Below are positions 3,734 through 21,700 of a stretch of DNA of 64,000 nt, piece by piece (positions within the stretch are counted from its first letter, which is position 1; every line of letters begins with the position of its first letter). A program made the translations under genes and the position numbers. The notes under the pieces are model-generated. The model was given only the letters and a program-made list of their open reading frames with translations. It was not told where the DNA came from and ran no database searches. The DNA comes from Macrostomum lignano. Its lineage: Eukaryota. The stretch spans positions 124,001 through 188,000 of the forward strand of contig NIVC01001010.1 of assembly GCA_002269645.1 (NCBI GenBank), read 5' to 3'.

Positions 3734-6700
3734 TCACCTGGCAGAGTTGGTCGAACGCTTGAAAAGTGTCGGCAGTCGAAGACTCGGACCTCCTCCGCCC
3801 TGCTTGCCTCTGTCGGCACTCTCTCCAGCTGCTTCTGCGTCAGACTCCAACAGCGGCTGCCGCTGTTGTTTGATTGGCGCCTCAGCTGGCGGCATGCGAT
3901 AGTTGTGATGCCGGCGGTGTCTGACTTGGCGGCGATGGTGCCTGCCGTGCTCGCAGCTGGCACCGTCTCTGCCGATTCGCTGCAGCTCGTCTGTCTGCGC
4001 TGGCTGCTTAGTTTCGTCTAGCTGTGGTATATACGAGTAGTTGATTTGTTTATTTATGTTTATATATAACTTTTTACCTACTGACAGTAGTAAGATTCAG
4101 ACTTCATCCTTTTTGAAAAGTTGGCACAAAATAATAAAAGCCAAAAAGGAAAATTTGATCACTATATCGGTACTTAATAGCATTAAACAAATGAAATGAA
4201 ACAAAGCGCTTTTTAAAACGGTACATATCCTATGCTCAAATATTCCCAATTCATGTCAAACTGTATCAAAGCGCTACGAAAACCATCTGTGTCAGATGCT
4301 GTAAGTGTCCATCTGTGTCAGATGCTGTAAGTGTGTCCGTCTGTGTCAGATGCTGTAAGTGTGTCCGTCTGTGTCAGATGCTGTAAGTGTCTATCTGCGT
4401 CAGATGCTGTAAGTGTCTATCTGTGTCAGATGCTGTAAGTGTCCATCTGTGTCAGATGCTGTAAGTGTCTATCTGTGTCAGATGCTGTAAGTGTGTCCGT
4501 CTGTGTCAGATGCTGTAAGTGTGTCCGTCTGTGTCAGATGCTGTAAGTGTCTATCTGTGTCAGATGCTGTAAGTGTCCATCTGTTTCAGATGCTGTAAGT
4601 GTCCATCTGTTTCAGATGCTGTAAGTGTCTATCTGTGTCAGATGCTGTAAGCGTCCATCTGTTTCAGATGCTGTAAGTGTCTATCTGTGTCAGATGCTGC
4701 AAATTCCTAGTGAAACAGTAAAGCGACCAAATGATTAAAAATAGTTGAAGAGTAAAAGAGGGCCAAACGGGATCGAAAAGGAAAATTGGCAAGCTGTGGC
4801 GGCGGGGGGTTCGCAAGGATCGGGTTGGGCGCGGGGGATTTCGGGGGGGGGGGGCAAAGACCTATTTTTTGCCTCCGGCCCTCCCGTCAGCCCCGCTAAA
4901 GCTTCCTCCTGCGCAATATTTGGCTTTTAGAGAGGGGAGAAGGGGCCAAATCAAGTGGGGAAGGCGCGGGCGAAGACCGGACTGGAATTATCCCATAGGT
5001 CCTGCATGCTAAATATGTACGAGCGTATATTGGGGGAGAAAAATCCCCACGAGAATTGGAGCTCAGCTCATTATGCACCAGCAAGCTCGCTTCATTTGTG
5101 CCTGGCTTTGATAGAGCTAGATGGAAACGGGCCGCCTGCTGAAGCCGAATTAACTTTGCTGAGGCTGTGCGTGAGCTGCGGATTGCGGCTTGGATTTCCC
5201 TTGCGCTGCGGTGCAGTCCTGCCGCCTGTCTGCTTCTGTGCCGCCTGTCTGCTTTTGTGCCGCCTGTCTGCTTCTGTGCCGCCTGTCTGCTTTTGTGCCG
5301 CCTGTCTGCTTTTGTGCCGCCTGTCTGCTTCTGTGCCGCCTGTCTGCGATTCTATCTGCCTGCGATTCTGTCTGTCTGCAATTCTGTCTGTCTGCGATTC
5401 TGTCTGTCTGCAATTCTGTCTGTCTGCAATTCTGTCTGTCTGCAATTCTGTCTGTCTGCAATTCTGTCTGTCTGCAATTCTGTCTGTCTGCAATTCTGTC
5501 TCTCTGCAATTCTGTCTGTCTGCAATTCTGTCTGTCTGCAATTCTGTCTCTCTGCAATTCTGTCTGTCTGCAATTCTGTCTCTCTGCAATTCTGTCTGTC
5601 TGCAATTCTGTCTCTCTGCAATTCTGTCTCTCTGCAATTCTGTCTGTCTGCAATTCTGTCTCTCTGCATTCTGTCTGTCTGCAATTCTGTCTCTCTGCAA
5701 TTCTGTCTGTCTGCAATTCTGTCTCTCTGCAATTCTGTCTGTCTGCAATTCTGTCTCTCTGCAATTCTGTCTGTCTGCAATTCTGTCTCTCTGCAATTCT
5801 GTCTCTCTTGGCTTCCTCAGAGATTCCTCATTAGCTGAATTGAGACAAACCGTGGCGCCATTGTGGCAACCAAGTCGAATTTATCAACCTGTTTTACTCC
5901 TTACACGCCTTAGCAACAATTGCTAATAATTTTAATTCTCATCAACATATTTTTATACTTAATTTTAATAAGTTTAGGCGACTAATAAGTTTGCTCTGAC
6001 CATTTTTGACAATAGATTGATTGTAATGATGGCAATCGGAACCACTTGAGGCAAGAGCTGGATTGATTAAAGAAAGCGAGTGAGATAATCTATAGGCTGG
6101 AACAATAGTTAAGAATGGCCTATATTATACACGTATAGCTAAGATATGTAATTATAGGGCATTAGCATACACCATGTAATTCCATGACACTGTTCAAACA
6201 CGACTAAGTGTTGCGCAATAACTCCTAATTATTAATAGGGTGCAGTGTTTTCTTTTCATTGTCTTTTTAACTGTATCTTTTCTGCACGAACTTTTAGCAC
6301 CCCCTGAATTTTCCGCAAAATGCACACACAAGCAGAAATACCGAGCCCTCATATTAAATTTTTCACCCTGAAAGGGCTAAAGCCGGCAGCAATTGAGGAG
6401 AAGATAAAGTCTGTACTCCACAACTTGTCCCTCTCTGCGTAATATCGAGCGACTTTACAACGAATTCAAGCGTAGCAGGGTGAGCCATAAAAGTTGAGGC
6501 AGTAGCGCGCACTGTGGGCATCTCAGCTGGGTCAGTGGATGGCATCCTGCGCAAGATCTTGGGCTGTTTCTTCTGAGACTGTCAGGGGATCCTGCTCGCC
6601 GAGTACCTGTCTGTTAGGCACACTGTCACAGGTGTCTGGTCCGCCGAACAGCTGGGCCGGTTTCGTCAGGCAGTGGTCCAGAAGAAGCGGGGGAAGCTGA

Positions 6701-9700
6701 GTGCTGGCCCCCTTGCTGCTTCACGACAATGCCTCAGCTCACACTGCCCAGGTTGCGGTGAATGCTGCCACCACTGCGGGGTTCGAAATCCTCCCACATC
6801 CGGCCTATTCACCAGACCTGGCACCCTCCGATTTTCATCTATTCCGTCAGCTCAAGCGGCCACTCCATGGGCACCGCTTCGAGTCCAAAGAAGAGGTCAT
6901 CACCCTCGCTAACCAGTGGCTACTTCAGAAAAGACTTACTATGAAGTTTTAAAAAAATTACCGAAATTTTACTGCCTATCCTTCCCACTCTACAGCATAG
7001 AAAAAAAACAGTTTGCGTAGGCCTAGACAAAAACTAGCTTTCATGCGCAAATAGTTCCACTTGTGTCAGTAGAGAGATTGGCATGCCAGGAACGAATGCT
7101 TTATGAAAACGAATGTTTAATTAAAGCGGTTACAGAATTTTCTACATAATAAAAGCTACCCAGACTTGCCTAACTCCAACTCTGGTTTCTCTTCATTCCA
7201 CGATTAAATCTTTCGCCTTTTACTAAAGATTTCCGTGGAGGGATACTCTTAGGAGAATTCTCTAGTTTTTGCAGCCCTTTCCTAGAAAGGCTTATTGGAA
7301 GTTGAATAGTTTAGACTAGCCTAGCTTAGCTCTTGAAAGTACTTTAGTTAGCCTTCCATTCCACTGTACATTTGTTTTTATCTCTACCCCACCCCTAGTC
7401 TTATCTTGCAGTCGCCCCACCCCTCTCAGCGAGCGCACTTTGTGTGCCTCCTGACTCATTAGTTAGTTGTAGTTTAGGTTTAGTTTGAGTGTACCCAAAT
7501 AATCACGCCATATGGCTGCAAATCGCGCCAGCGCTAAAAAGATGGACTGCCGGCCCTCTCTCGAGCACCGGTATCGTCCGAACGAAGCCTACGGTCGCCA
7601 GCTTCTTGGACTGACGCCGACAGCTGAGCCATCGACTGCGCAGGCCTGATGCGAGCTCGACGCAGTCTGGAAGGCCGCCACTCGATCAGCCCACCGGCCG
7701 GCGAGCTCTTGCGCAACGCAGAGGAGATCCTGCGAGAGAATGAGCAGCTGCCGGAGGCTGCAGGCGCAGAGGCAGAGCAGCGCATGTCTCTCGACTGCGA
7801 CGAGCCAGGCCAGAAAAGCGCCCTGCCATCCAACGAGGCCGCAGCAACCACCGAGCCACCAACTGCCGAGTCCAGCGAGCTCGGTGCGGCAGCGGCAGCG
7901 CCGACGTCTGAGGAGCGCCAGCAATCGGCTGCAGACCAGGCCTCGACGCTGCCAAAGCCCCCTGCCGAGCAACTGGACGCTGACATCAGTCAAATCATCT
8001 TCCCTGATGAGCCTGACTTGACTGACTGTCAGCAGACGATCTACGCCAGCGACAGCACCATCATCTATGCGCCCAAGTTCCTGAGCGAGGTCGCGGACCA
8101 AGTCTACGAGCGCCTGATCACCGACCTGCTGCCTCTGGCCTTTCAGCATCGTCCGAGTGAGCAGCGCCGCGTCTACTGGATCGGCCCGTCGTACACCTAC
8201 AGCGGGGTTGAGCTGAAGGAAAATCTAGACTGGCATCAGGTAATTGAAGACATTCGTGACTTCATTTACCATGATACCCAGTTCGATGTCCCGAAGTTCA
8301 ACTCCGTGTTGGTGAACTTCTACACCGAGCCGGGAGACCGGATTCCCTGGCACTCGGACGATGAGGATGAGCTCGGCGACAGGCCGACGATCGCGACCGT
8401 GTCCTTCGGCGCTGAGCGGCTGTTCATGCTGCGCCGTCGGGACGGCAACGTGACGCACCGCTTTCCAACGCTGCCAGGCTCGCTGATTCTGATGGCAGGA
8501 AACTGCCAGAAACGCCTGCAGCACCAGGTGCCCGCCGCCCACTCTCAGAATGGCGTCCGCATCTCGCTAACATTCCGTGTCACCAAGCCGGAGCTGCGGC
8601 GCAAGCGGCTCTGCCGGATGACCCGACCTACAGCCAGCCGCTCAACGGCGGCCCATTCGGCGACGACCAAGGCGGTCGGGACGACGACCAAGGCGGCCAC
8701 GACGACGACCAGGGCGGCCGGGGCGACGACAGGCCCCAGGAGCGGCAGGCGACGGCGACGCGAGACCGCGAAGGCGATCGGGGTCGGCGCGGCCGTGGCG
8801 GCCACCAGCGAGGCAGGCGAGGAGGTCGCGGCGCGGCGTCCGGTGCGGCGGCGGCTTCGGCGGCTTCCTGGCCGGCCGGTGCGGCGGCGGCTTCGGCGAC
8901 AAGCGCGCAGGCGGCTGCGGCAGCGCGGCCCTACGCGCAGGTTGCGGCGCGCCCTGCGCCGCCCAGAAGGCCCCAGGCTGCCATCCCGCCGATCGTTTTT
9001 GAGGTGCACCGGGACGCGGCCAACAAGCTGATGCAGTTCGTTGCCTGGCTGCAGACCAACTTTGCCGGCGAAGCTAGAGCCGTCAACACTGCGCCGATGG
9101 CGAATCAGCCGGCCTATCTCGTGTTCCCAGCGTCGGAGCGGGACTACAACGTCTTCCTGGGCGGCGCGCTGCGCGAGGAGAAGCTGCTCGAGCATCCCGT
9201 AAAGCGCCGTCCAGCCCGAGCCCGACCGCTGGACAACAGAACAGGGCCCGACAGAGTGCAGCAGCAGCCGGTACGCACCTTCGTCGCTACTGAGGTGCCC
9301 CTCGCATTCTCGGAGGCTGACTTCGCGACCCTGTTGCGCGGCACGCTCAAGCTGGACATTGTCAGCGTCCACAGAATCCGAGCCAGAGCGACTGGGAAGG
9401 CAACCCAGTTCGTGCGCATCTTCACAAAGTCGGCGATGACCTACGAGAAGTGCCTCCGCGATGGCATCTGCACCGACTTCTTGAAGTTCAACTGCGAGGA
9501 CAGCCGCACAGACGAGCCGGTCCGCGCTCTGCAATGCCAGCGCTGCCAGGAGTTCGGCCACCGCGCTGCTCAGTGTCGGGGGCAGCAGCGCTGCCGGATT
9601 TGCGGCGGCCAGCATTCCTGGAAGGAGTGCCAGCACGAGGGCCCAGCGGTCTGCGCCAACTGCGGCGGCTCGCACCGAACCACCAGTCGAGCCTGCACCG

Positions 9701-12700
9701 TCGCCAAGGCGGAGCACGACAAGGCGACCAGAGCGGCTGCTGAGGCCAAAGCCGCGGCGCGAGCTGCGGAAGCTGCGGCCGCTGCTGCCCCAGTGTCAAG
9801 TGAGACCGACGACGCCGCCGCCGACGACGACTCCGACAGCGGCTGGCTGATCCGCCGAGGCAGGCGCACGGTGCCGGTACCCGCCGCGATCCGGCCGCTT
9901 GTCATCGTGACCGATGATGCCAGGAGCGCTCCGGCGGCAGAGACCGAGTCTGATGTCAATGCGACTGCTCCGTCAGCTGATGCCGGCCAGGCGGTGCAGC
10001 TGCAGCTTAGTGACTTTATGTCGGTGGTGAGCATGCTGTTGCCCCTGATCACCCGCTCTCTGACTCAAGTGGTTGTGCAGGCCCTGTCCCGACCGCCTGG
10101 GGAGGTCCTCACTGTGGAATCAACCAGTAAAATGGTTGAGGACATTGTGCGGGCTGCACTCCAGGAAGTGCCGGGCATGGCTGGCATGACCACTGAGTCC
10201 TAGTCTCAGGCAGCTAAACTCAAGACTTGAATTGAAACTTCAGTGCGTTAACTGTAGACTCAAACAATCAAACCACAGCCCTGAAGATTATGCATTTAAA
10301 CTGCAGGGGATTCAACCCGAAAATCAGAGAGCTGACACAGTGGGTCGTCAGTCAGGAGCTAGACATTGCCCTCTTTTCTGAGACCATTCTCAAAAGTTGT
10401 CACACTGTCCAGATTCCCGGGTACTCCATCATTCGGTATGATACCCCGCAAGTCAAACGCGGGCTTCTCCTTGCCCACTCTCCTCGCGTCAAACTCACAA
10501 ATGTGCGCTTGCAGTATGACAATGTCAACCATGAAGCCATCTCTTGCACCGTGAGCTTGTCTGACAACTCTGGTCCTGACTTCAATCTCGCTCTGGTGTA
10601 CAGGTCTCCAGCACCGTACCATCTGAACCTGAACCTACTAAAAATCTTCTCTCTCGTAGGCGCAGTGTGCTCATGGGTGACCTCAATGCCAGACACCGCT
10701 TCCTCGGGGTGACAGCAGCAACAACATGGCTGGCTACCAGCTGCACGACTGGCTGTCTGAGGGCCCCACCTCGCCCACCATTCTCAATCAAGCCGGTCAG
10801 TTCACCAGACTGGCCACCAAAAACGGGCTGATTTCTAGGAATGTCTTGGACCTCGCCCTGGCCACTGAGGACTTTCTCCCATTTGTGCAGGACTTTGAGG
10901 TGGGTCCTGACCTGGGCAGTGACCACTTACCTATAATCCTCACGCTCAATATTCAGTCGAAGAAATGGGCTGGTCCCCCCAGACCCAAAAACTTCTCAAA
11001 AACAAACTGGGACGAGTTCAGACTCAAAATCAGTGAAGCTTTGAGCTCAGATCAGAATATTAAATTATCAAATGCTGACCAAATCAATGCCGAAGTGGAT
11101 CACATCACAAAGGCCATTCACACCGTGATTGACTCCACAGTACCAGACTGTGGTGCCAAAAACGCCCTACCCAAGTACATCCTCGACCTGATCAAAGAGC
11201 GCAGACGACTCAGACGCCTCTTCTTCAGCACACGGGATCAAAATTTCAAAACCCAAGCAAACCAGCTCGCAAATCGCATAAAGAGAGAAATTAACTCCTT
11301 CCAGAATGGAAAGCTCACCAAAGTCTGTGAGAGTATTGTTGAAAACAGCAAGAACAAGAAAGTGAAGAATTTCTGGCATGACACTAAAAAGCTGATGGGC
11401 AAATTTAAGCCAACCTCGATCCCCAGCCTCACCCTGGGTCAAACAACTGCGCACACAGATCTGGAGAAGGCTAACCTTCTAGCCGAGACTCTGGACTCAA
11501 AGATGCGCCCAGTCCCTTCCACATGCGAACAGCTCAAACGTGAGGTGGCCGATGTGGCACAGCTCACCTCATTCTACCCCGTTCCTGAGGGAATCGAACC
11601 CATCGAGACCACCCACTTGATGCTGCATTCTCTGTGGCAGACACAGTGTGGGAACTGGAGCACCTCAGGCCTGATGGAGCACCCGGGCTGGACAAGATTC
11701 CCAACTGCGTCCTCAAGCTGGGCTTAGAGGGGGTGGCAATCACGAGACTCACTAACCTCTTCAACGCCTGCTACGGTCGAGGGATTTTCCCCAGCGCCTG
11801 GAAGAAAGCTGTGGTGACAATGATCCCCAAGCCGGACAAACCGCCCGAACACCCCAACTCCTACAGACCAATCAGCCTGACCTCATGTCTGGGCAAAGTG
11901 TTTGAGAAGCTTATAGCAAAAAGACTCACCAAGCACCTTGAGGATAATAAGACCCTAGGAGATGACCAATGCGCCTACCGCAAAATTCACTCCACGTATG
12001 ACAACCTGTGCCGTCTGGCACAAGATGTCATGGTAGCAAAGTGCAAAGCTAAAAAGTCCGCTGCAGTCTTCCTGGATGCAGAGGCAGCTTTTGACTCCAC
12101 CTGGCACGACAAGATCAGGCATAGCATGCTCACCGATGGTTTTCCACCTATGCTCATGCGAATCCTGTCTGACTACCTGCGAGACAGACAGATCCAGGTT
12201 CGAATCGAGGGGGCCCTAAGCGATCCCCACACCATCCAGGCTGGCGTCCCTCAGGGAGGCATTCTGAGCCCTCTCCTGTACCTCCTCTTCGTCAGCTCAA
12301 TGCCGACTCCCACCATCTCAAGCGTCAAACGCAGTCAATTCGCAGACGACATGGCCGTCTGGGCCTCAGCAGACACCTTTGCGGGGCTCCGAACATCCCT
12401 TCAAAGCTACCTCAGACGAGTCTTTGACTGGTGCGGTAAACAAGGCATTAGACTGAATGCCGGTAAAAGCAAAGCAATCGCTTTCAACTACAAACCCACT
12501 AGGCGCATGGACTTGCGACCCAAACTGTATCTGGGGGACACTGAGGTTCCGTACTGTCAGGAGGTGAAATTCCTGGGTGTCCTCCTTGACCAGAGCCTCT
12601 GCCTGAACAAACATGTGGACAACATGGCAGATACCAGCAGAGCCATTGTAATGTCACTGTGCAGAATTGCAAAAATGACAAAGCTGAGTAGCACCACCCT

Positions 12701-15700
12701 CAGAATGCTGTACAGGGCATACGGAGAAAGCGCTCTCACCTACGGAGCGCCAATCCTGAGCCAAATCTGTGCGACTAACCAAATCAAATTGCAGAAAATT
12801 CAAAACCTGGCTCTCCGTATCTGCTATGGTGTGCCATCCTACATCAGCATTGAATACCTGCACAAGCTGGCAGGTATGCCGATGCTCGCAGACAGGGTCA
12901 AGCAGCTGGGGGTGGCTTGGCTGCTCAAGATGAGGGCAGCCAAGCTCCACAGCTTCCACATTGAGCCGGAAGCCCCTCGGGCTCCGGGCCGAACCCCTGT
13001 CCTCAATGTCCTCTGGGATGCCATGAGGCGTCGGGAAAGAAACAGGGGATTCCCACCCCAGGGTTAGGCTGGCTACCAGCCTTCCAAACCGGAAGTGACC
13101 ACGCTCTGAAACGCAACTAATAAAACTAAACTTGCTGCCTGAGACAGAGATCGGTTGATCAGTCATTAGGACTGATTAGGTAATCTCTATGTCTCCTCGC
13201 GTTTCTTTTTACAATTTTCCCAACTGTGTTTTTTACCCAACTGCTCTACAAATATTACTAATTGCTTTTTTACACCTTTACTATATTCATTCTATTTTTA
13301 CAACTAAATTCAAATATGCGCTATTGCATTTTTAATCTCTATTTTTTACTTAAATGTCTTGCTTTTATTCTCAATAGGCCTTCAAATATCTAGCACGTAT
13401 TTTTTAGATGTCCTGTTTTTATTAGATCCCTTCTTTGTGTGGGATTTCCCTCCCCTCTTTTTTATCCCCAAATGCGTGCAAAATACTGCAAAATATTGAA
13501 AAATAGTTTTATATATGTATATTTTTAATTTCAATATTCGTATTAAATATTCAAATCGAAATCTTGTAAATATTTTTAATTCTTTCGATCAAATACAAAA
13601 TATAACTGCGGCAGAGTTCTTCGGAACTGACCCGCGCCGGTTTCGACGGCACCTCGTTTTAACAACAAAGATTTCCGTGGAGGGATACTCTTAGGAGAAT
13701 TCTCTAGTTTTTGCAGGCCTTTCCTAGAAAGGCTTATTGGAAGTTAAATAGTTTAGACTAGCCTAGTTTAGCTCTTAAGAGTACTTTAGTTAGCCTTCCA
13801 TTCCACTGTACATTTGTTTTTTTATCTCTACCCCACCCCTAGTCTTATCTTGCAGTCGCCCCACCCCTCTCAGCGAGCGCACTTTGTGTGCCTCCTGACT
13901 CATTAGTTAGTTGTAGTTTAGGTTTAGTGTGAGTGCACCCAAATAATCACGCCATATGGCTGCAAATCGCGCCAGCGCTAAAAAGATGGACTGCCGGCCC
14001 TCTCTCGAGCACCGGTATCGTCCGAACGAAGCCTACGGTCGCCAGCTTCTTGGACTGACGCCGACAGCTGAGCCATCGACTGCGCAGGCCTGATGCGAGC
14101 TCGACGCAGTCTGGAAGGCCGCCACTCGATCAGCCCACCGGCCGGCGAGCTCTTGCGCAACGCAGAGGAGATCCTGCGAGAGAATGAGCAGCTGCCGGAG
14201 GCTGCAGGCGCAGAGGCAGAGCAGCGCATGTCTCTCGACTGCGACGAGCCAGGCCAGACAAGCGCCCTGCCATCCAACGAGGCCGCAGCAACCACCGAGC
14301 CACCAACTGCCGAGACCAGCGAGCTCAGTGCGGCAGCGGCAGCGCCGACGTCTGAGGAGCGCCAGCAATCGGCTGCAGACCAGGCCTCGACGCTGCCAAA
14401 GCCCCCTGCCGAGCAACTGGACGCTGACATCAGTCAAATCATCTTCCCTGATGAGCCTGACTTGACTGACTGTCAGCAGACGATCTACGCCAGCGACAGC
14501 ACCATCATCTATGCGCCCAAGTTCCTGAGCGAGGTCGCGGACCAAGTCTACGAGCGCCTGATCACCGACCTGCTGCCTCTGGCCTTTCAGCATCGTCCGA
14601 GTGAGCAGTGCCGCGTCTACTGGATCGACTGCACACAGACTCCATCTGTGTGCAGTATTTGTCCACTTTTTCAAACTCCAAATGTATGCAAAGAAATTCC
14701 AAATATTGAAAAATAGTTTTATTTATTTAAACTTTTATTTCAATATTCTTTCAATATCTAAATCAAATGCACTGCGCCGACCAGAAGGCTTCAGGCTGCC
14801 ATCCCGCCGGTGGTTTTCAAAGTGTAACAGGTCGCGGCCAACAAGCTGGTGCCCTATATTGCCTGGCTGCTCGTACAGGCAAATTTTTTGCTGGTGAAGC
14901 CGCGCCGTCAACACTGCGCAGATGGCGAATCAGCCGGCCTACATCGTATTGCCGGCGTCGGGGCGAGACTAAAATGTCTTCCTGGGCGGCGCGCTGCGTG
15001 AGGAAAAGCTGCTTGAACATCCGTCCAGAGCCCGACCGCTGGATAACCCATACAGGGCCCGACAGAGTCCAGCAGCAGCCAGTCATCACATTTGTCGCAC
15101 CTGACGTGCCTTTTGAGATCTCAGAGGCGACCCTCTGCTCTGTAGGATGCCATAAGGCTTCGGGAAAGAAACAGGGGATTCCTAATCCAAGGTTAGGCTG
15201 GTCGACAGTCTCCCAGAGCCGAAGTGAGCACGCGCTGAAATGCATTAAAGACTATTTATGCTGCCTGAGCCAGAGAGATCGGATGATAGGACCCTTGTAT
15301 GATCTGTAATCTCCCTGTGCAAATTGACTTTATTCAAACTATTTGTATTTTTTGACAGCTTTTACAAATACCCCTGGATGCTTTTATACCAATGATATAC
15401 TCGTACTACCTATAAAATTGTATCTGAACATGCGCTATTGCGTTTGATTTCATTTTTTACTCAGTAGCCTCTTTTTGCCTTTAACAGGCTCTTAAAAATC
15501 CAGCATGCATTTTTTAGATTTCCTTATTTTTATCACCTGTAAATATTTAAATTCTTTCGATTAAATAAAACAATAATACAGATATGTACCCGTTTTTACG
15601 GCACCTCGTTTTAACAACAACGATTTCCGTGAAGAGGAACATTCAAATTCAATGAGTGTTCCCTGATTTGTGAAACCCCTTACAAGAAATTGTACTAATG

Positions 15701-18700
15701 AAGCAAAAACATTGCTTGTCAATTCCCTCTAAGGCGTGATCGCAAGCCCATAGGACGCACGCAACACCATTTTCAAGTGTTGAAGTGTGCGGCGGAGTTT
15801 TTCGGAACTGATCTGCGCTAAGTTTTTACGGCCCCTCGTTTTAACAAAGATTTCCGTGATGAGGTACTCTCAACGAGAATTACATGTACTCTGATTTGTG
15901 CAACCCTTACAAAGGGTACAATAGACTTTGAATAGTTTAGCTCTATCTCAAAGTACGAGTACATAGCTAGCCCCTCCATCCATTCCACTGTACATTTATT
16001 TCCCCACTCTTCTAGTTTTATTTTGTAGTCGCCCCACTTCTTACTGAGCGGATTTTGTGTGCCTCCTGACCCTTAGAGTTTAGTGTTTTAGTTCGAGTGT
16101 ACCAAAAAGAAATCACGCCATATGGCTGCGAAGCGGATCGCAGAAGCCGAGGTCCAGGCAGGCCTCGACGCCGTGACCGAGTGGTGCGCCTCCCGCAAGC
16201 TCGCCCTTAATCCTACCAAGAGCGAGGCTGCCTTTTTCTCCATAGACCCGGCGAAGGCAAAATGGTCCCCGCGTCTTAGCCTCGGCCAAGCCCCACTCAA
16301 GCGCAATCTCACGCCGCGGCTGCTCGGCCTTACTTACGATCGGCTCCTCACCTTCAACACGCACACGGAAGGAGTTTGCAGGAAGGTGCATTCACGCAAT
16401 CGAATGCTGGTCTGCCTCGCCGCGCGCGATTGGGAATGGCAGAAAGACGCCCTCAAGCGCACTTTTATCGCCATGCAACGGAGTATCATGCTGTACGCCG
16501 ACCCCGCCTGTCACCCTTGGCTAGACGGCACCACTTTTGAGAAGCTCCAACGTTCGCAAAACGCCGCTCTCCGAATCATCACCGGCCAGCACCGCTCAAC
16601 GCCGATTGAAGCGCTGCGCATCGAGGCCAGTTTTTGCTTTGCTCTTTCCGTACCACAAGCGACATGGCGACTGGTCAGGTCAACCACCGCTCGGCCAGAG
16701 GCGGCACGCTTCCAACCTGCTCGCCACTTTGCCACCAGAGCGATAGTTGCGCGAACCACTTGACACCCGCTCTGCCTTCTCCCGCCCCGCCATCGTCATC
16801 CCTCATTACCCCGCGCTTATCTGCATCTATTGCGACGGCTCCGCCACTGAGGGCACCACCAACGGCGGTTTCTCTGTGGTCATCTGCACGGGTGACCCCT
16901 CCCCCCCCCCCAAGTGGTGTAGCACATCTCTGCCACCGGGCGCGCTCTCACCAGCTCCTTCGATGAGAAGCTCGCCGCTCCCCGTTGCGCTCTCCATTGG
17001 CTCGCTTCTGGTGCCCACTCTCAGTCGATGCTCTGCGCGCTCCAGAGCCCTACCTGTCGTATTTGGCCTACTCTCCTTCTGCCGCAATGCCAGTCAACAT
17101 CCGACGCGATGACGCAGACAGCGTACACGTTACACAGAAGAAAACGGCAGCTCGAAGGGCTTGCATGTTAAACGCATTTACATCTGCGACCTTCTCGATG
17201 TATAAGAATTTGCCTCTGACGGGTCAACAATTCAAGAGCTCTGGGATCGTCATGGATTACATCAGACAGCACGTTCTAGGACAAGTTAACATCATCGTGG
17301 AGAGAAACCGATTTTAGAAACGTCAAAAAACAATGGAGGAAATTTCAGCTACAATTTCAATTTCAAGAGTAATGGGTTGACTAAAGAGTAGTTTGATGAC
17401 TTGGCTGGGCTAATTGTTGTTAGTGTTGTTTGCATGTACTTTATTCAGTGTTTTGGAGGTGGCGTTTTTACCCTGTTCAGTACGTGCGCCCTTCTACAAT
17501 ATTTCGCTGTACGTTCTTATGTACGCTTTTCATTCTGAACGCTCTTGTACAATACGATGGACGCATTCCCTCCAGCATGCTGTATGGACACCCGACAAGG
17601 GACCCCCCTGCTCATTTACGAAGCTTTAACCTTGAGTGGTACAGCACAATTGAGCAGATGGAGCAGACTGCATCTGAAACCCACAAGACAGTGATGCAGC
17701 AGTACAACAAGTCCAAGAAGAGTCTCGACCGAATCAGAATTGGCTCGACTGTGGTTCTACAAGACCCGACAACCAAGCTGGGGCAACGGAGGGGCGTGGT
17801 GGTGGAGGTAGGCAAACACCGCGACTACATATACCTGATCAAGCTAACTAGTGGCCGAATACTACGGAGAACTCGTATCTGCATCCGGCCAGCACTACCA
17901 TGGAATGCCGATGATCTGCACCAGGCGACTAGCAAGCTGGTGGATCGAGAATGTACCAAGACGGACAATGACGGAGACTTGAGGATCAAAGGCCACAGGA
18001 GAGACCTCGCGTTAGTGCCAGATCGACAAAAAATATCCCACCAGTTCGGTTTCAGTGCAGCCGACTGGGGCAGCCGAAAGTTCTGTTCGTCGAGTAAATA
18101 AGGAACAATGACTTTAAAGGGCAGATGGTATAGATGATGAGATACCGTATTTATATCTATGGCCCTGACCCAAAGCCTACGTGCTTGGCCCGCTATCAGA
18201 GCAGCCCAACATGCAATAGGTATAACACTGTACACAATTACCTTGGCCAGGTGTTTAGCAATGAGCCGCCAGCGCGGTAGCAGCAGGTGGCGCTGCAAGG
18301 CGAAGGCCAGAATGACCAGTGGGAAGGCGAGGGCTGCGTAGGCCAGCTGCAGAAACTGGGCCAGGCAGTTCAGCGTGAGCAGCATCAGCACGTGGGCCAG
18401 CTGCAGAGCCGTGAACGCCAGCAGCACAGCGCTCGGCACGTCCAAGTAGGGCTTCGGCTGGCGATTCTTCTTCAGTTTCAGCAGGTTGAACAGCCGGTCG
18501 GCCAGCTGCAGGTCGGCCAGGGCGGCCAGGCCCATGCAGAGGAACATGCCGTCCATGGCGGCCAGCGGGATGAGGCGCAGCAGCCGGGCCGCCAGCACCG
18601 AGGCCACCAGCAGGGCCCCCACGGCCAGGCCGCTGACCCGCTGCTCGGCCACGCCAAGGACGCGCCTCGGACAGCCGGGAATCGGGTTAGCCGGATCCGC

Positions 18701-21700
18701 CAGCGTCAGCACCCGGACGTGCGTGTGCGATCGGATGGTGGCCCCTGTCAGCAGCGGCCAGCCCAGCAGGCCGTGCAGCGGCGGCGCCAGCGACGCGATG
18801 AGAGCCAGGCTGAGGTGACGGCCAGCCGGCTTGGCCAGGCGCTGCTCCAGGCCGCTGTCGCACAGGCCGGTCTCGGTGAACAGCACCACGGCGGTGCAGC
18901 AGCCGATCAGCAGGGCGATGAGGTGGCCGAAGGCGCCAACGGTGGCCAGGTCGGCTGCGCTGGGCAGGCGTGGCGACAGGCCCGACAGCAGCTGGGTGAG
19001 ATTGCCGCTGAGCTGCGGGAGTGCCATGCCGGTGCCTTTCTTTAGGTTTGATCAGTTCGGCAAAACTGAGGGCGATCTCGGAAATTGGAATGGCGATTTA
19101 CGCGGGATTTCATTTGTGCCGGAATGAGTTAGCTGAGAAAGGGAAAATTCCCCTGCATGGTGGTTAGTCATCCATTCTCCCTTCTCTCCTTTCATCTCAC
19201 TCTTCTCCTTTCCTTTCCTCTCCTCTCCTCTGCTCTCCTCTCCTCTCCTCTCCTCTCCTCTCCTCTCCTCTCCTCTCTCCTCTCATCTACTCTCCTCTCC
19301 TCTCCTCTCCTCTCCTCTCCTCCTCTCCTCTCCTCTCTCCTCTCGTCTACTCTCCTCTCCTCTCTTCTCTCCTCTCCTCTCTCCTCTCCTTTCTTTCCTC
19401 TCTTCTCTTCTCCTCTCTCCTCTCCTCTTCTCTCTTCTCTCCTCTCCTCTCTTCTCTCCTCTCCTCTCTTCTCTTCTCCTCTCCTCTCCTCTCCTCTCCT
19501 TTCTTCTCTCTCCCCTCTCCTCTCCTCTTACCCATAATTTGGAAATCCCATGTGAGTGAAATAGTCCCAATTAACCTCTCAGCGCTAAAGCTAAATACCC
19601 CGCACAATGGAGCATCTCAATAAAACACCCCCATACCTGCAGCGTGGCCAGTTCGTGATGCCGCATTGCAGTATTCGACAGCAGGGTGACCGCTGCGATG
19701 GCCAGCGGCACGTTCAATCCGGCTATGAGGTCCCGGGTTCGACGCCCTAAATAATTGCCCCGTTTAAAGCGCATAATTCGCAGCGCCAGCAGCGCCGTGG
19801 CCAGCGTCAGGAAGGCGGCGGCGGCGGAGGCGGCGCAGGACTCGCCGGCCAGCTGGGCGAACATGCGCACAGTCGGGCGCAGCAGGAAGAAGATGGCAAC
19901 GAACAGGTTGAAGATCTCCTCGGTGGCGCGGGTGATTCTGCCTGCCAGGCCGGCTCCGTTCAGCAGCAGGATGGCCAGGCCGCACAGGCCCGTGTAGGCG
20001 CAGCAGACTGGGCGGAAGGCCCGCCAGGGCAGGCCTAGTGAGGCCGACAGCGAGCTGATGGCCTGGGTTTGGAGGAATTGGGAGGGTTGATTGACATTGC
20101 TGACTATAGAGTGACATTGATACCGATAGAGTGACATTGATACCGATAGTGACATTGATACCGATAGAGTGACATTGATACCGATAGAGTGACATTGATA
20201 CCGATAGAGTGACATTGATACCGATAGAGTGACATTGATACCGATAGAGTGACATTGATACCGATAGAGTGACATTGATACCGATAGAGTGACATTGATA
20301 CCGATAGAGTGACATTGATACCGATAGAGTGACATTGATACCGATAGAGTGACATTGATACCAATAGAGTGACATTGATACCGATAGAGTGACATTGATA
20401 CCGATAGAGTGACATTGATACCGATAGAGTGACATTGATACCGATAGAGTGACATTGATACCGATAGAGTGAAATTAATACCGATAGAGTGACATTGATA
20501 CCGATAGAGTGACATTGATACCAATAGAGTGACATTGATACCAATAGAGTGACATTGATACCGATAGAGTGACATTGATGTCGATAGAGTGACATTGATA
20601 CCGATAGAGTGACATTGATGTCGATAGAGTGACATTGATGTCGATAGAGTGACATTGATGTCGATAGAGTGACATCGATGTCGATAGAGTGACATTGATA
20701 CCAATAGAGTGACATTGATGTCGATAGAGTGACATTGATGTCGATAGAGTGACATCGATGTCGATAGAGTGACATTGATACCAATAGAGTGACATTGATG
20801 TCGATAGAGTGACATCGATGTCGATAGAGTGACATCGATGTCGATAGAGTGACATTGATACCAATAGAGTGACATCGATGTCGATAGAGTGACATTGATA
20901 CCAATAGAGTGACATTGATGTCGATAGAGTGACATTGATGAAAATAGAGTGACGCTGCAAGGAATATTGGACTGAAATTCTAAAGAAATACTGCTGGAGG
21001 CATCTGAATTAGAAAATTGTAAGACATGAGAACTACCTGCTCCATGATGAAGATCGGGCCAGTCACTCCCACCAGCATCATGGGCTGGCCGCCGGCGGCA
21101 GCGAAGGCCAGCTGTCCGAGGCCGCTGGCCACCAGAGTCCGGCCGACGGTCAGCTCGCCCGCAGTCTCGTTGTGCAGCATAGCGCCGAACGACACCGCCG
21201 GGGCCAGGCATGTGAAAAACACGAACAGCAGGCCGGTTGCTATTGGCAACGCGTGACGCCTGGCGTCAGCCAGGTCGCCCGGGTAGCGGCGCCGCAGGTT
21301 GCTCAAGTCGCTGAGCAGTCCAGACGCAGCCAGCCAGACCGGGCAGCGCCAATTACCCGGCGACGCCGTAGCTGCTGCCGCAACCGGCGTCGCCAGCCCG
21401 ACATCGGCCGACGAAAATCCGACATCGTCGACTCCATCGACATCGGCTACGCGATGCTCACTGCCGCTGTCGTCCTCAACCTCGGCGGCGGCGGCCTCCT
21501 CGAACCGGACGAGCTCCTCGATGGTGTCCATAGTCCAGGCGGCTGGGGAGGGCAGCACCACGGTGCCGTCCAGGCTGCTGTGCAGGGCGGCGACGAGGTC
21601 CCACCGGCAGCTGGCCGAGTAGAGGCGGGCGCGGAACACCGGGTCCATCGCCAGGCAGGCAAACACGCGGCCAAGCTCGAAGGCCAGCACCGGGTCCGCG

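Follow-up and report, generated by a model that had tools for sequence, protein, structure and literature searches.

The window analyzed here, 64,000 nt of the Macrostomum lignano genome (GCA_002269645.1, contig NIVC01001010.1, positions 124,001-188,000, forward strand), contains a U5 small nuclear RNA (snRNA) gene followed by copies of a retrotransposon lacking long terminal repeats (a non-LTR retrotransposon), next to which the 3' half of U5 recurs. This arrangement raises the question of whether the repeated halves are target sequence duplicated at each insertion or a component that the element carries with it, as a preliminary description of the region had proposed in treating them as heads of the elements that follow. 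Comparison with further loci supports the second answer: the U5 3' half acts as the 5' head of the downstream element and is not a simple target duplication. We consider it probable that the region at 15619-15920 forms the older end of an array in which a non-LTR retrotransposon specific for U5 snRNA genes stands in tandem, inserted between U5 nt 51 and 52.

Rfam identified one U5 gene in the window (Table 1), in which no second U5 5' half is present. The promoter-proximal U5 matches the RF00020 model over its full length both here (81 bits) and at other loci (83.5-83.8 bits). The 10-mer GATTTCCGTG, which begins at U5 nt 52, has four exact occurrences in the window, all on the + strand, at the starts of four U5 3' halves (copies 1 to 4, at 7228, 13670, 15622 and 15849). 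Copies 2-4 are each directly preceded by the exact 14-mer CCTCGTTTTAACAA, the end of a retrotransposon tail. All of the strings quoted in the preliminary description were recovered in place: copies 1 and 2 (type A) show TGGAGGGATAC, AGTTTTTG and the hairpin CCTTTC-cta-GAAAGG; copy 3 (type C) begins with GATTTCCGTGAAGAGGAAC and has GATTTGTG at 15665; and copy 4 (type D) begins with GATTTCCGTGATGAGGTAC, with the Sm-like GATTTGTG at 15893 and the 6-bp hairpin ACCCTT-aca-AAGGGT at 15903-15917. Over aligned positions, identity is 73% between types A and C, 77% between A and D and 82% between C and D; the halves are homologues of the U5 3' half, not chance matches.

The comparison set comprised four more stretches from three contigs of the same assembly, reached via protein cluster members. 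On NIVC01002892.1, a U5 gene (83.8 bits) is followed by four near-identical elements, with five halves spaced about 6.45 kb apart. Across the window and the three contigs, all 11 of the 11 tail-to-half junctions place the 3' tail of the element directly against U5 nt 52, with tails of variable length ending in (CAA)n or an A-run, and the U5 5' half and promoter precede only the first unit of an array. The insertion point, on the 3' strand of the stem that lies below loop I, is the same in two groups of loci with clearly different flanks. Every full-length copy opens with U5 nt 52-116 and about 28 nt of U5 3' flank. At the end of the NIVC01002892.1 array (stretch L007), a tail is followed by an A-type half, TTATTAGAAGTTGAATAGTTTAGACTAG and then unique sequence in place of the 5' untranslated region (UTR), a pattern that shows the repeated unit to consist of U5 nt 52-116 with some 28 nt of 3' flank and fixes the 3' boundary of the head unit. 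Since this terminal A-type half is followed by unique flank, the heads look captured from ordinary U5 genes and not invented by the element.

Locus L006 is informative on the origin of the halves. Its upstream flank is nearly the same as that of the window and its array is different: a full-length A-type element (5664-12117), with an intact 688-aa first open reading frame (ORF1), has an A-type half in front, and behind its A-type tail stands the C-type half GATTTCCGTGGAGAGGAACATTCAATGAGTGTTCCCTGATTTGTGAAACCCCTTCCAAGAAGGGG. A target duplication would have given equal halves. It could nevertheless be proposed that two staggered cuts about 93 bp apart duplicate resident U5 nt 52-116 with its flank each time the element inserts, the variants being resident paralog halves plus decay. 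Long target duplications do occur in some site-specific elements (49 bp in SLACS), a half is found on both sides of every element, and the last three halves of NIVC01002892.1, including the terminal one by the unique flank, share the variant TTATTAGAAG. Against this stand the discordant insertion already seen in L006, where 4-5 of 93 positions distinguish the first half from the second with elements about 99% alike, the 11-nt duplication of a truncated copy in a further locus, L005, and a junction between half and 5'UTR that is common to the diverged types A and D. We regard such long duplications as very unlikely.

A single haplotype spans the half and the 5'UTR in the promoter-proximal units at three loci (the window, L006 and NIVC01002892.1); the halves that follow these elements depart from it. 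In NIVC01002892.1 the upstream flank has diverged much further, yet the elements are 99% identical. Types A and D have the same half-5'UTR junction and show similar divergence on either side of it (77% identity in the half and, for the D flank plus 5'UTR at 15919-16121 against E1, the first element of the window, 84% over aligned positions). The A/C discordance of L006 and the shared promoter-proximal haplotype led us to reject both the reading in which each half is the tail of the element upstream and that of a simple target-site duplication.

L005, with the same upstream flank as the window and a third array, contains a 5'-truncated 578-bp copy (9058-9710, equal to window 13092-13669) that interrupts the U5 gene after nt 62. 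The copy is preceded by U5 nt 1-62, with an 11-nt duplication and 8 nt of filler, which indicates that the natural target duplication is short. The broken U5 scores 43.8 bits over model positions 14-63 only, and the locus has no complete U5; truncated insertions thus destroy their target. Its 5' truncation and short target duplication are hallmarks of long interspersed nuclear elements (LINEs), as is the variable 3' tail of the family (AACAAA, AACAACAAA, AACAACAACAAA and AACAACAAAAAA were seen). Together, the unequal halves of L006, the single haplotype at three loci and the 11-nt duplication bear out the proposal that the half is the head of the following element. Given this behavior, the resident U5 gene would have its 3' domain replaced whenever a full-length copy inserts.

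The mechanism that we favor would begin with transcription of the element together with the U5 gene ahead of it, most simply from the U5 promoter. The element would then nick U5 genes between nt 51 and 52 and undergo target-primed reverse transcription there, and the end of the cDNA would pair with the target's own U5 5' half, giving a seamless 5' junction. The order at the new locus would be resident U5 nt 1-51, donor U5 nt 52-116, the element and resident U5 nt 52-116. Each full-length insertion would thereby rebuild a complete U5 with the 3' domain of the donor, and the older half, pushed downstream, would decay; copies 3 and 4 (types C and D, 15619-15920) would be such displaced halves. 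We infer the RNA-mediated steps from sequence; the junction pattern is observed directly. With 81-84 bits on the Rfam U5 model, the rebuilt U5 genes appear to be complete. Taken as a whole, a U5-specific LINE that carries the U5 3' half and rebuilds U5 genes on insertion is the account that we hold to be reasonably likely, if well short of assured.

Several observations weigh against this account. The upstream flanks of the window, L006 and L005 are nearly identical, which means that these loci are not fully independent. Private changes are about as frequent in the A-type halves next to the promoter (one each) as in those inside the arrays, so that no current constraint on the former is visible. 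In type D, two pairs of stem Ib and one of stem Ia are mismatched, and the type C half may be a resident half and not a head, as only element stubs follow it. A relative with a 66%-identical reverse transcriptase (RT), on a Logan contig (L001), has no U5 sequence adjoining it. Finally, internal copies have mosaic head and 5'UTR haplotypes, which indicates that the arrays are also shaped by recombination or gene conversion. The same mosaicism would be expected if unequal crossing-over, tandem duplication and gene conversion had set paralog halves beside elements at the DNA level only, with no RNA-carried head, as would the second window element (E2), a patchwork of three pieces, and the four near-identical tandem copies in NIVC01002892.1. 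Such processes leave unexplained, however, the exact tail-to-nt-52 junctions with tails of variable length, the 5'-truncated copy with its short duplication and the identical A-type tail abutting a C-type half. We judge an origin by these processes alone to be unlikely; they probably act on top of retrotransposition, not instead of it.

Two very short units (window 15709-15848 and L006 12190-12242, the latter of about 53 nt) consist of a C-type half, a few nt of flank and a tail stub. Such units could have arisen by deletion or as chimeras from template switching, or they could represent a small non-autonomous form. In the window unit, E3 (15622-15848), about 80 bp without a match and then a tail of 60 bp come after the U5 half; in L006, the C-type half is followed by element stubs only. 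These units, with their 16-30 nt of flank and short piece of tail, fit a further explanation, in which the RT jumps at each event from the LINE RNA to a 3'-extended U5 precursor, the half then reflecting a nearby U5 RNA and not a lineage. Template switching has a precedent in the documented U6-L1 chimeras of mammals (PMC4476161). A single fixed half-5'UTR junction in all A-type copies and in the D-type copy argues instead that the head is inherited and not re-made, and the carried flank extends 28 nt beyond the U5 3' end. As a general explanation, per-event switching seems very unlikely, although it may still hold for E3. E3 resembles SINEU, with its U1/U2-derived heads, and the U6-L1 chimeras in having snRNA sequence 5' of a LINE-derived tail (PMC4494074, PMC4476161); these differ in carrying the 5' part of an snRNA or the whole of it and in being dispersed. 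E3 does not qualify as a short interspersed nuclear element with an snRNA-derived head: it has a LINE tail, but with the U5 3' half only, as a single copy and inside a U5 array.

The preliminary description had assigned copies 3 and 4 to element subfamilies that each supplied a different U5 3' module, which is partly supported. For copy 3 the assignment is uncertain: an almost canonical metazoan U5 half, intact in L006, is present here in decayed form before a nearly deleted element, and it may be a resident half and not the product of a subfamily. Over aligned positions copy 3 is 92% identical to the L006 half, having lost the hairpin, through four changes, and gained a 6-nt duplication. Copy 4 is not an intact family member either, since homology to the family ends at about 16135, covering the first 287 bp only (start codon at 16122), and the body beyond is 28% identical to the family RT; it is probably, to judge from its sequence, a fragment of a different, unrelated LINE that does not belong to the U5 element, and the array is interrupted at this point. 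Exact-protein look-ups of the window ORFs at 16122-16763 and 14767-15309 returned no match. Copies 3 and 4 of the window are decaying relics. The hairpins indicate that the halves once belonged to U5 RNAs under selection.

This last point bears on the further claim that the diverged heads conserve U5 structure and not sequence. Pairing was tallied by hand over the canonical pairs, since minimum-free-energy folding of the chimeras did not recover the canonical U5 structure, not even with the real gene. When the halves were scanned on their own, Rfam returned no U5 match, and the A-type control gave none likewise. Joined to the U5 5' half, the C-type half of L006 forms 11 of 11 pairs in stem Ib, 4 of 4 in stem Ia and 7 of 7 in the hairpin, type D forms 9/11, 3/4 and 6/6, and copy 3 is fully compatible in both stems (11/11 and 4/4) with a dead hairpin; copies 1 and 2 form 10 of 11 pairs in stem Ib, so that the tallies of the preliminary description were reproduced. 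Under random substitution of the canonical strand, however, the chance of at least the observed number of stem Ib pairs is 0.21 for the window C-type half (11/11), 0.38 for A (10/11) and 0.52 for D (9/11). The 5' strand of stem I is invariant, so that covariation cannot be seen there, and it is U-rich, so that half of all transitions keep pairing. The fit of stem I is what chance gives, and the reading of it as covariation has to be given up.

The terminal hairpin tells a different story. Between types A (GCCUUUC/GAAAGGC), C of L006 (CCCCUUC/GAAGGGG) and D (ACCCUU/AAGGGU), the outer and the fourth pair have changed on both strands. When four random changes were introduced into the 14 stem bases, all 7 pairs survived in 1.0% of trials (0.010) and at least 6 contiguous pairs in 3.3% (0.033). 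These compensatory changes indicate that each lineage of halves was once under structural selection within U5 RNA, and here the claim of structure conserved over sequence does hold. The selection concerns history only: the window copies are now relics, and the current promoter-proximal half of the window (head unit T1) itself carries a private G-to-C change that breaks the outer hairpin pair.

The proteins of the element place it among the LINEs. Its RT domain is clear (Pfam RVT_1, 5e-37, 128 bits) and about 35% identical to many animal LINE RTs. N-terminal to it lies a putative apurinic/apyrimidinic (AP)-like endonuclease, frameshifted in the E1 copy, whose match to Exo_endo_phos_2 (E 2.6e-4, 21.3 bits) is below the cut-off of 27.4 bits; a structure search of the PDB with this domain gave faint matches only, to L1 endonuclease structures (E 0.06-0.3), and PDB searches with endonuclease and RT gave no clade placement. 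As read from motifs and not from a phylogeny, the E1 RT is of the QxxYRxxHST type and not of the L1/Tx1 GF(I/V)PGR type, which suggests the Jockey/I/R1 group. ORF1 is 99% identical to M. lignano proteins. A scan of metagenomes with the element RT found no relatives, and a JGI contig (L002) contained no U5 sequence.

ORF1 opens with an AlkB-like 2-oxoglutarate-Fe(II) dioxygenase domain (window 7649-8640; P0223 from L006 6233-8299), in which the motifs HxD, H and RxxxxxR are present as WHSDDE, LQHQV and RISLTFR. In the intact 688-aa copy of L006, this domain is fused to CCHC zinc knuckles, and its nearest relatives are bacterial AlkB proteins (about 40-45% identity). We know of no AlkB ORF1 in Keno and other Tx1-clade target-specific LINEs. 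AlkB domains have been reported in orchid Ty3/Gypsy elements (PMC9289625), and we found no literature report of one in a LINE. Within the element, G+C is 67% across ORF1 (window 8001-10000) and falls to about 50-54% across ORF2 (10001-13000).

The usual way for a site-specific retrotransposon to persist is to insert into redundant genes, which it breaks. R2 and R1 interrupt the rRNA gene without rebuilding it, whereas the U5 element carries about 93 nt of its target and the whole snRNA gene appears to be restored. The proposed reliance on the host gene promoter, and on target sequence within the transcript for precise junctions, is a feature that it would share with R2 and R1 in ribosomal DNA. 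Some phages and integrative elements carry the 3' part of their target tRNA gene, and integration regenerates an intact gene; the U5 element likewise bears the 3' end of a target RNA gene, but by a route that would be RNA-mediated and in an animal, as opposed to DNA recombination by an integrase in bacteria. If the account is correct, an element that restores its target with one part exchanged would parallel such phages, in a eukaryote and by way of RNA, and would provide a mechanism for concerted change of the variable U5 3' domain. For R2 and R1, co-transcription with the target and the use of target sequence at the junctions are cited in a passage of PMC4494074.

Retrotransposons specific for snRNA genes are already known; what is added here is a flatworm element with U5 as its target, an ORF1 of AlkB-gag type and evidence, from comparison across loci, for a carried 3' part of the target. 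Utopia elements are non-LTR retrotransposons specific for U2 snRNA genes that form arrays in Phytophthora (PMC4640811). Like the U5 element, they use one site in a spliceosomal snRNA gene and form tandem arrays in which snRNA fragments lacking the 5' part follow each element (PMC4640811); unlike it, they have a restriction-like endonuclease, in place of the AP-type endonuclease suggested by the weak Pfam match, and target U2. In the Phytophthora arrays, an intact U2 gene lies upstream where a 5' fragment was expected, with fragments from nt 39 downstream, which the authors explained by deletion or recombination and not by a carried half (PMC4640811). Our cross-locus data, in contrast to that account, point to a carried 3' half, which may also explain the intact upstream genes of the Utopia arrays. 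Keno, like Utopia, targets U2, and one Tx1 family is marked 'U5 snRNA' in Fig. 3 of PMC4494074; no description of that family was found in the searchable literature. The M. lignano element resembles Keno and the Tx1 clade, which are AP-endonuclease LINEs, as a LINE with an snRNA gene target and a putative AP endonuclease and differs from them in the RT motif type described above and in its AlkB ORF1.

A broader view, which goes beyond the sequence and which we consider unlikely, is that the element may be a passenger of the U5 gene: its RNA, driven by the U5 promoter and led by U5, would perhaps use the U5 Sm site and terminal hairpin for small nuclear ribonucleoprotein assembly and nuclear re-import, and the element would overwrite U5 3' domains and drive their turnover and homogenization, part of the spliceosomal U5 pool being element-borne. 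M. lignano is a transgenic laboratory model, so that the co-transcript and the use of element-borne U5 can be tested directly. The features of the array are collected in Table 1.

Table 1. Features of the U5 gene and the retrotransposon array in the window.
Feature	Position	Strand	Basis or remarks
U5 promoter-proximal flank	7097-7176	+	blocks conserved between diverged loci (alignment of four loci)
Complete U5 snRNA gene	7177-7292	+	Rfam RF00020, 81 bits (gathering score 40), model positions 1-117
Resident U5 5' half	7177-7227	+	U5 nt 1-51
A-type U5 3' half of complete gene	7228-7292	+	U5 nt 52-116
Element E1, full length, 6442 bp	7228-13669	+	99% identical to copies in NIVC01002892.1
E1 head (head unit T1, type A)	7228-7320	+	part of E1; U5 nt 52-116 and 28 nt of 3' flank TTATTGGAAGTTGAATAGTTTAGACTAG
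E1 5'UTR	7321-7648	+	part of E1
E1 ORF1, frameshifted	7649-10203	+	AlkB-like dioxygenase and three CCHC knuckles; Pfam 2OG-FeII_Oxy_2 1.2e-21
E1 ORF2, frameshifted	10290-13067	+	endonuclease and RT; Pfam RVT_1 5e-37, Exo_endo_phos_2 2.6e-4 (below cut-off)
E1 3'UTR (600 bp) and tail	to 13669	+	tail end ...CCTCGTTTTAACAACAAA
E2, composite	13670-15621	+	blastn of E1 against the window, and sequence
Head unit T2, type A	13670-13762	+	head of E2
3'UTR scrap within E2	14663-14767	+	blastn of E1 against the window
Older diverged element remnant in E2, ending in tail	14769-15621	+	77% and 69% to E1 ORF1 and 3'UTR
Head unit T3, type C, decayed	15622-15708	+	U5-like 15622-15692 and flank TACTAATGAAGCAAAA
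E3 body, 140 bp	15709-15848	+	final ~60 bp (15788-15847) match family tail, 83% to 13607-13665
Head unit T4, type D	15849-15940	+	U5-like 15849-15917 and flank with conserved TTGAATAGTTTAG
D-type 5'UTR and start codon	15941-16135	+	homologous to E1 5'UTR
RT C-terminal and RNase H-like remnant	16136-17100	+	28% aa identity to E1 RT

Further observations concern the array and its surroundings. The first 960 bp of E2 are 98.6% identical to E1 by blastn. The A and D units, diverged elsewhere, have the string TTGAATAGTTTAG unchanged in common (window 7306-7318 and 15928-15940), at 14-26 nt beyond the U5 3' end in type A and 11-23 nt in type D. It is a candidate signal for snRNA 3'-end processing, one that the element would take along. 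The tail end (CCTCG--TTTTAACAAA, followed by GATTT; 13652-13669, 15604-15621 and 15834-15848) resembles loop I of the U5 target (TTTCGCCTTTTACTAAA, followed by GATTT), so that every tail-half junction has the look of an inferior target site; units within an array need not be arranged strictly by age.

In the four-locus alignment, the final 16-20 nt or so upstream of U5 +1 are hypervariable. At 7157-7176, 5-6 of 20 positions (-20 to -1) differ from the same place in L005 and L006, compared with 6-11 of 220 (3-5%) farther upstream; these 20 nt vary among the three loci without change in length, with U5 nt 1-51 the same in all of them. A C-terminal fragment of a Tc1/mariner-type transposase (window 6713-6949; DDE_3, 5.3e-7), also present in L006, ends some 230 bp upstream of the U5 gene. 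The window begins with a 25-nt satellite, AAACTCAACAATCTCCCATCAAACT (1-1254; 50 copies, 98% matches, no G on the given strand). On the minus strand, 17825-21211 holds a gene for an SLC4-type bicarbonate transporter with two long exons (HCO3_cotransp, 2.3e-34 and 1.3e-9), and the intron between them contains a (CT)-rich repeat (19170-19530).

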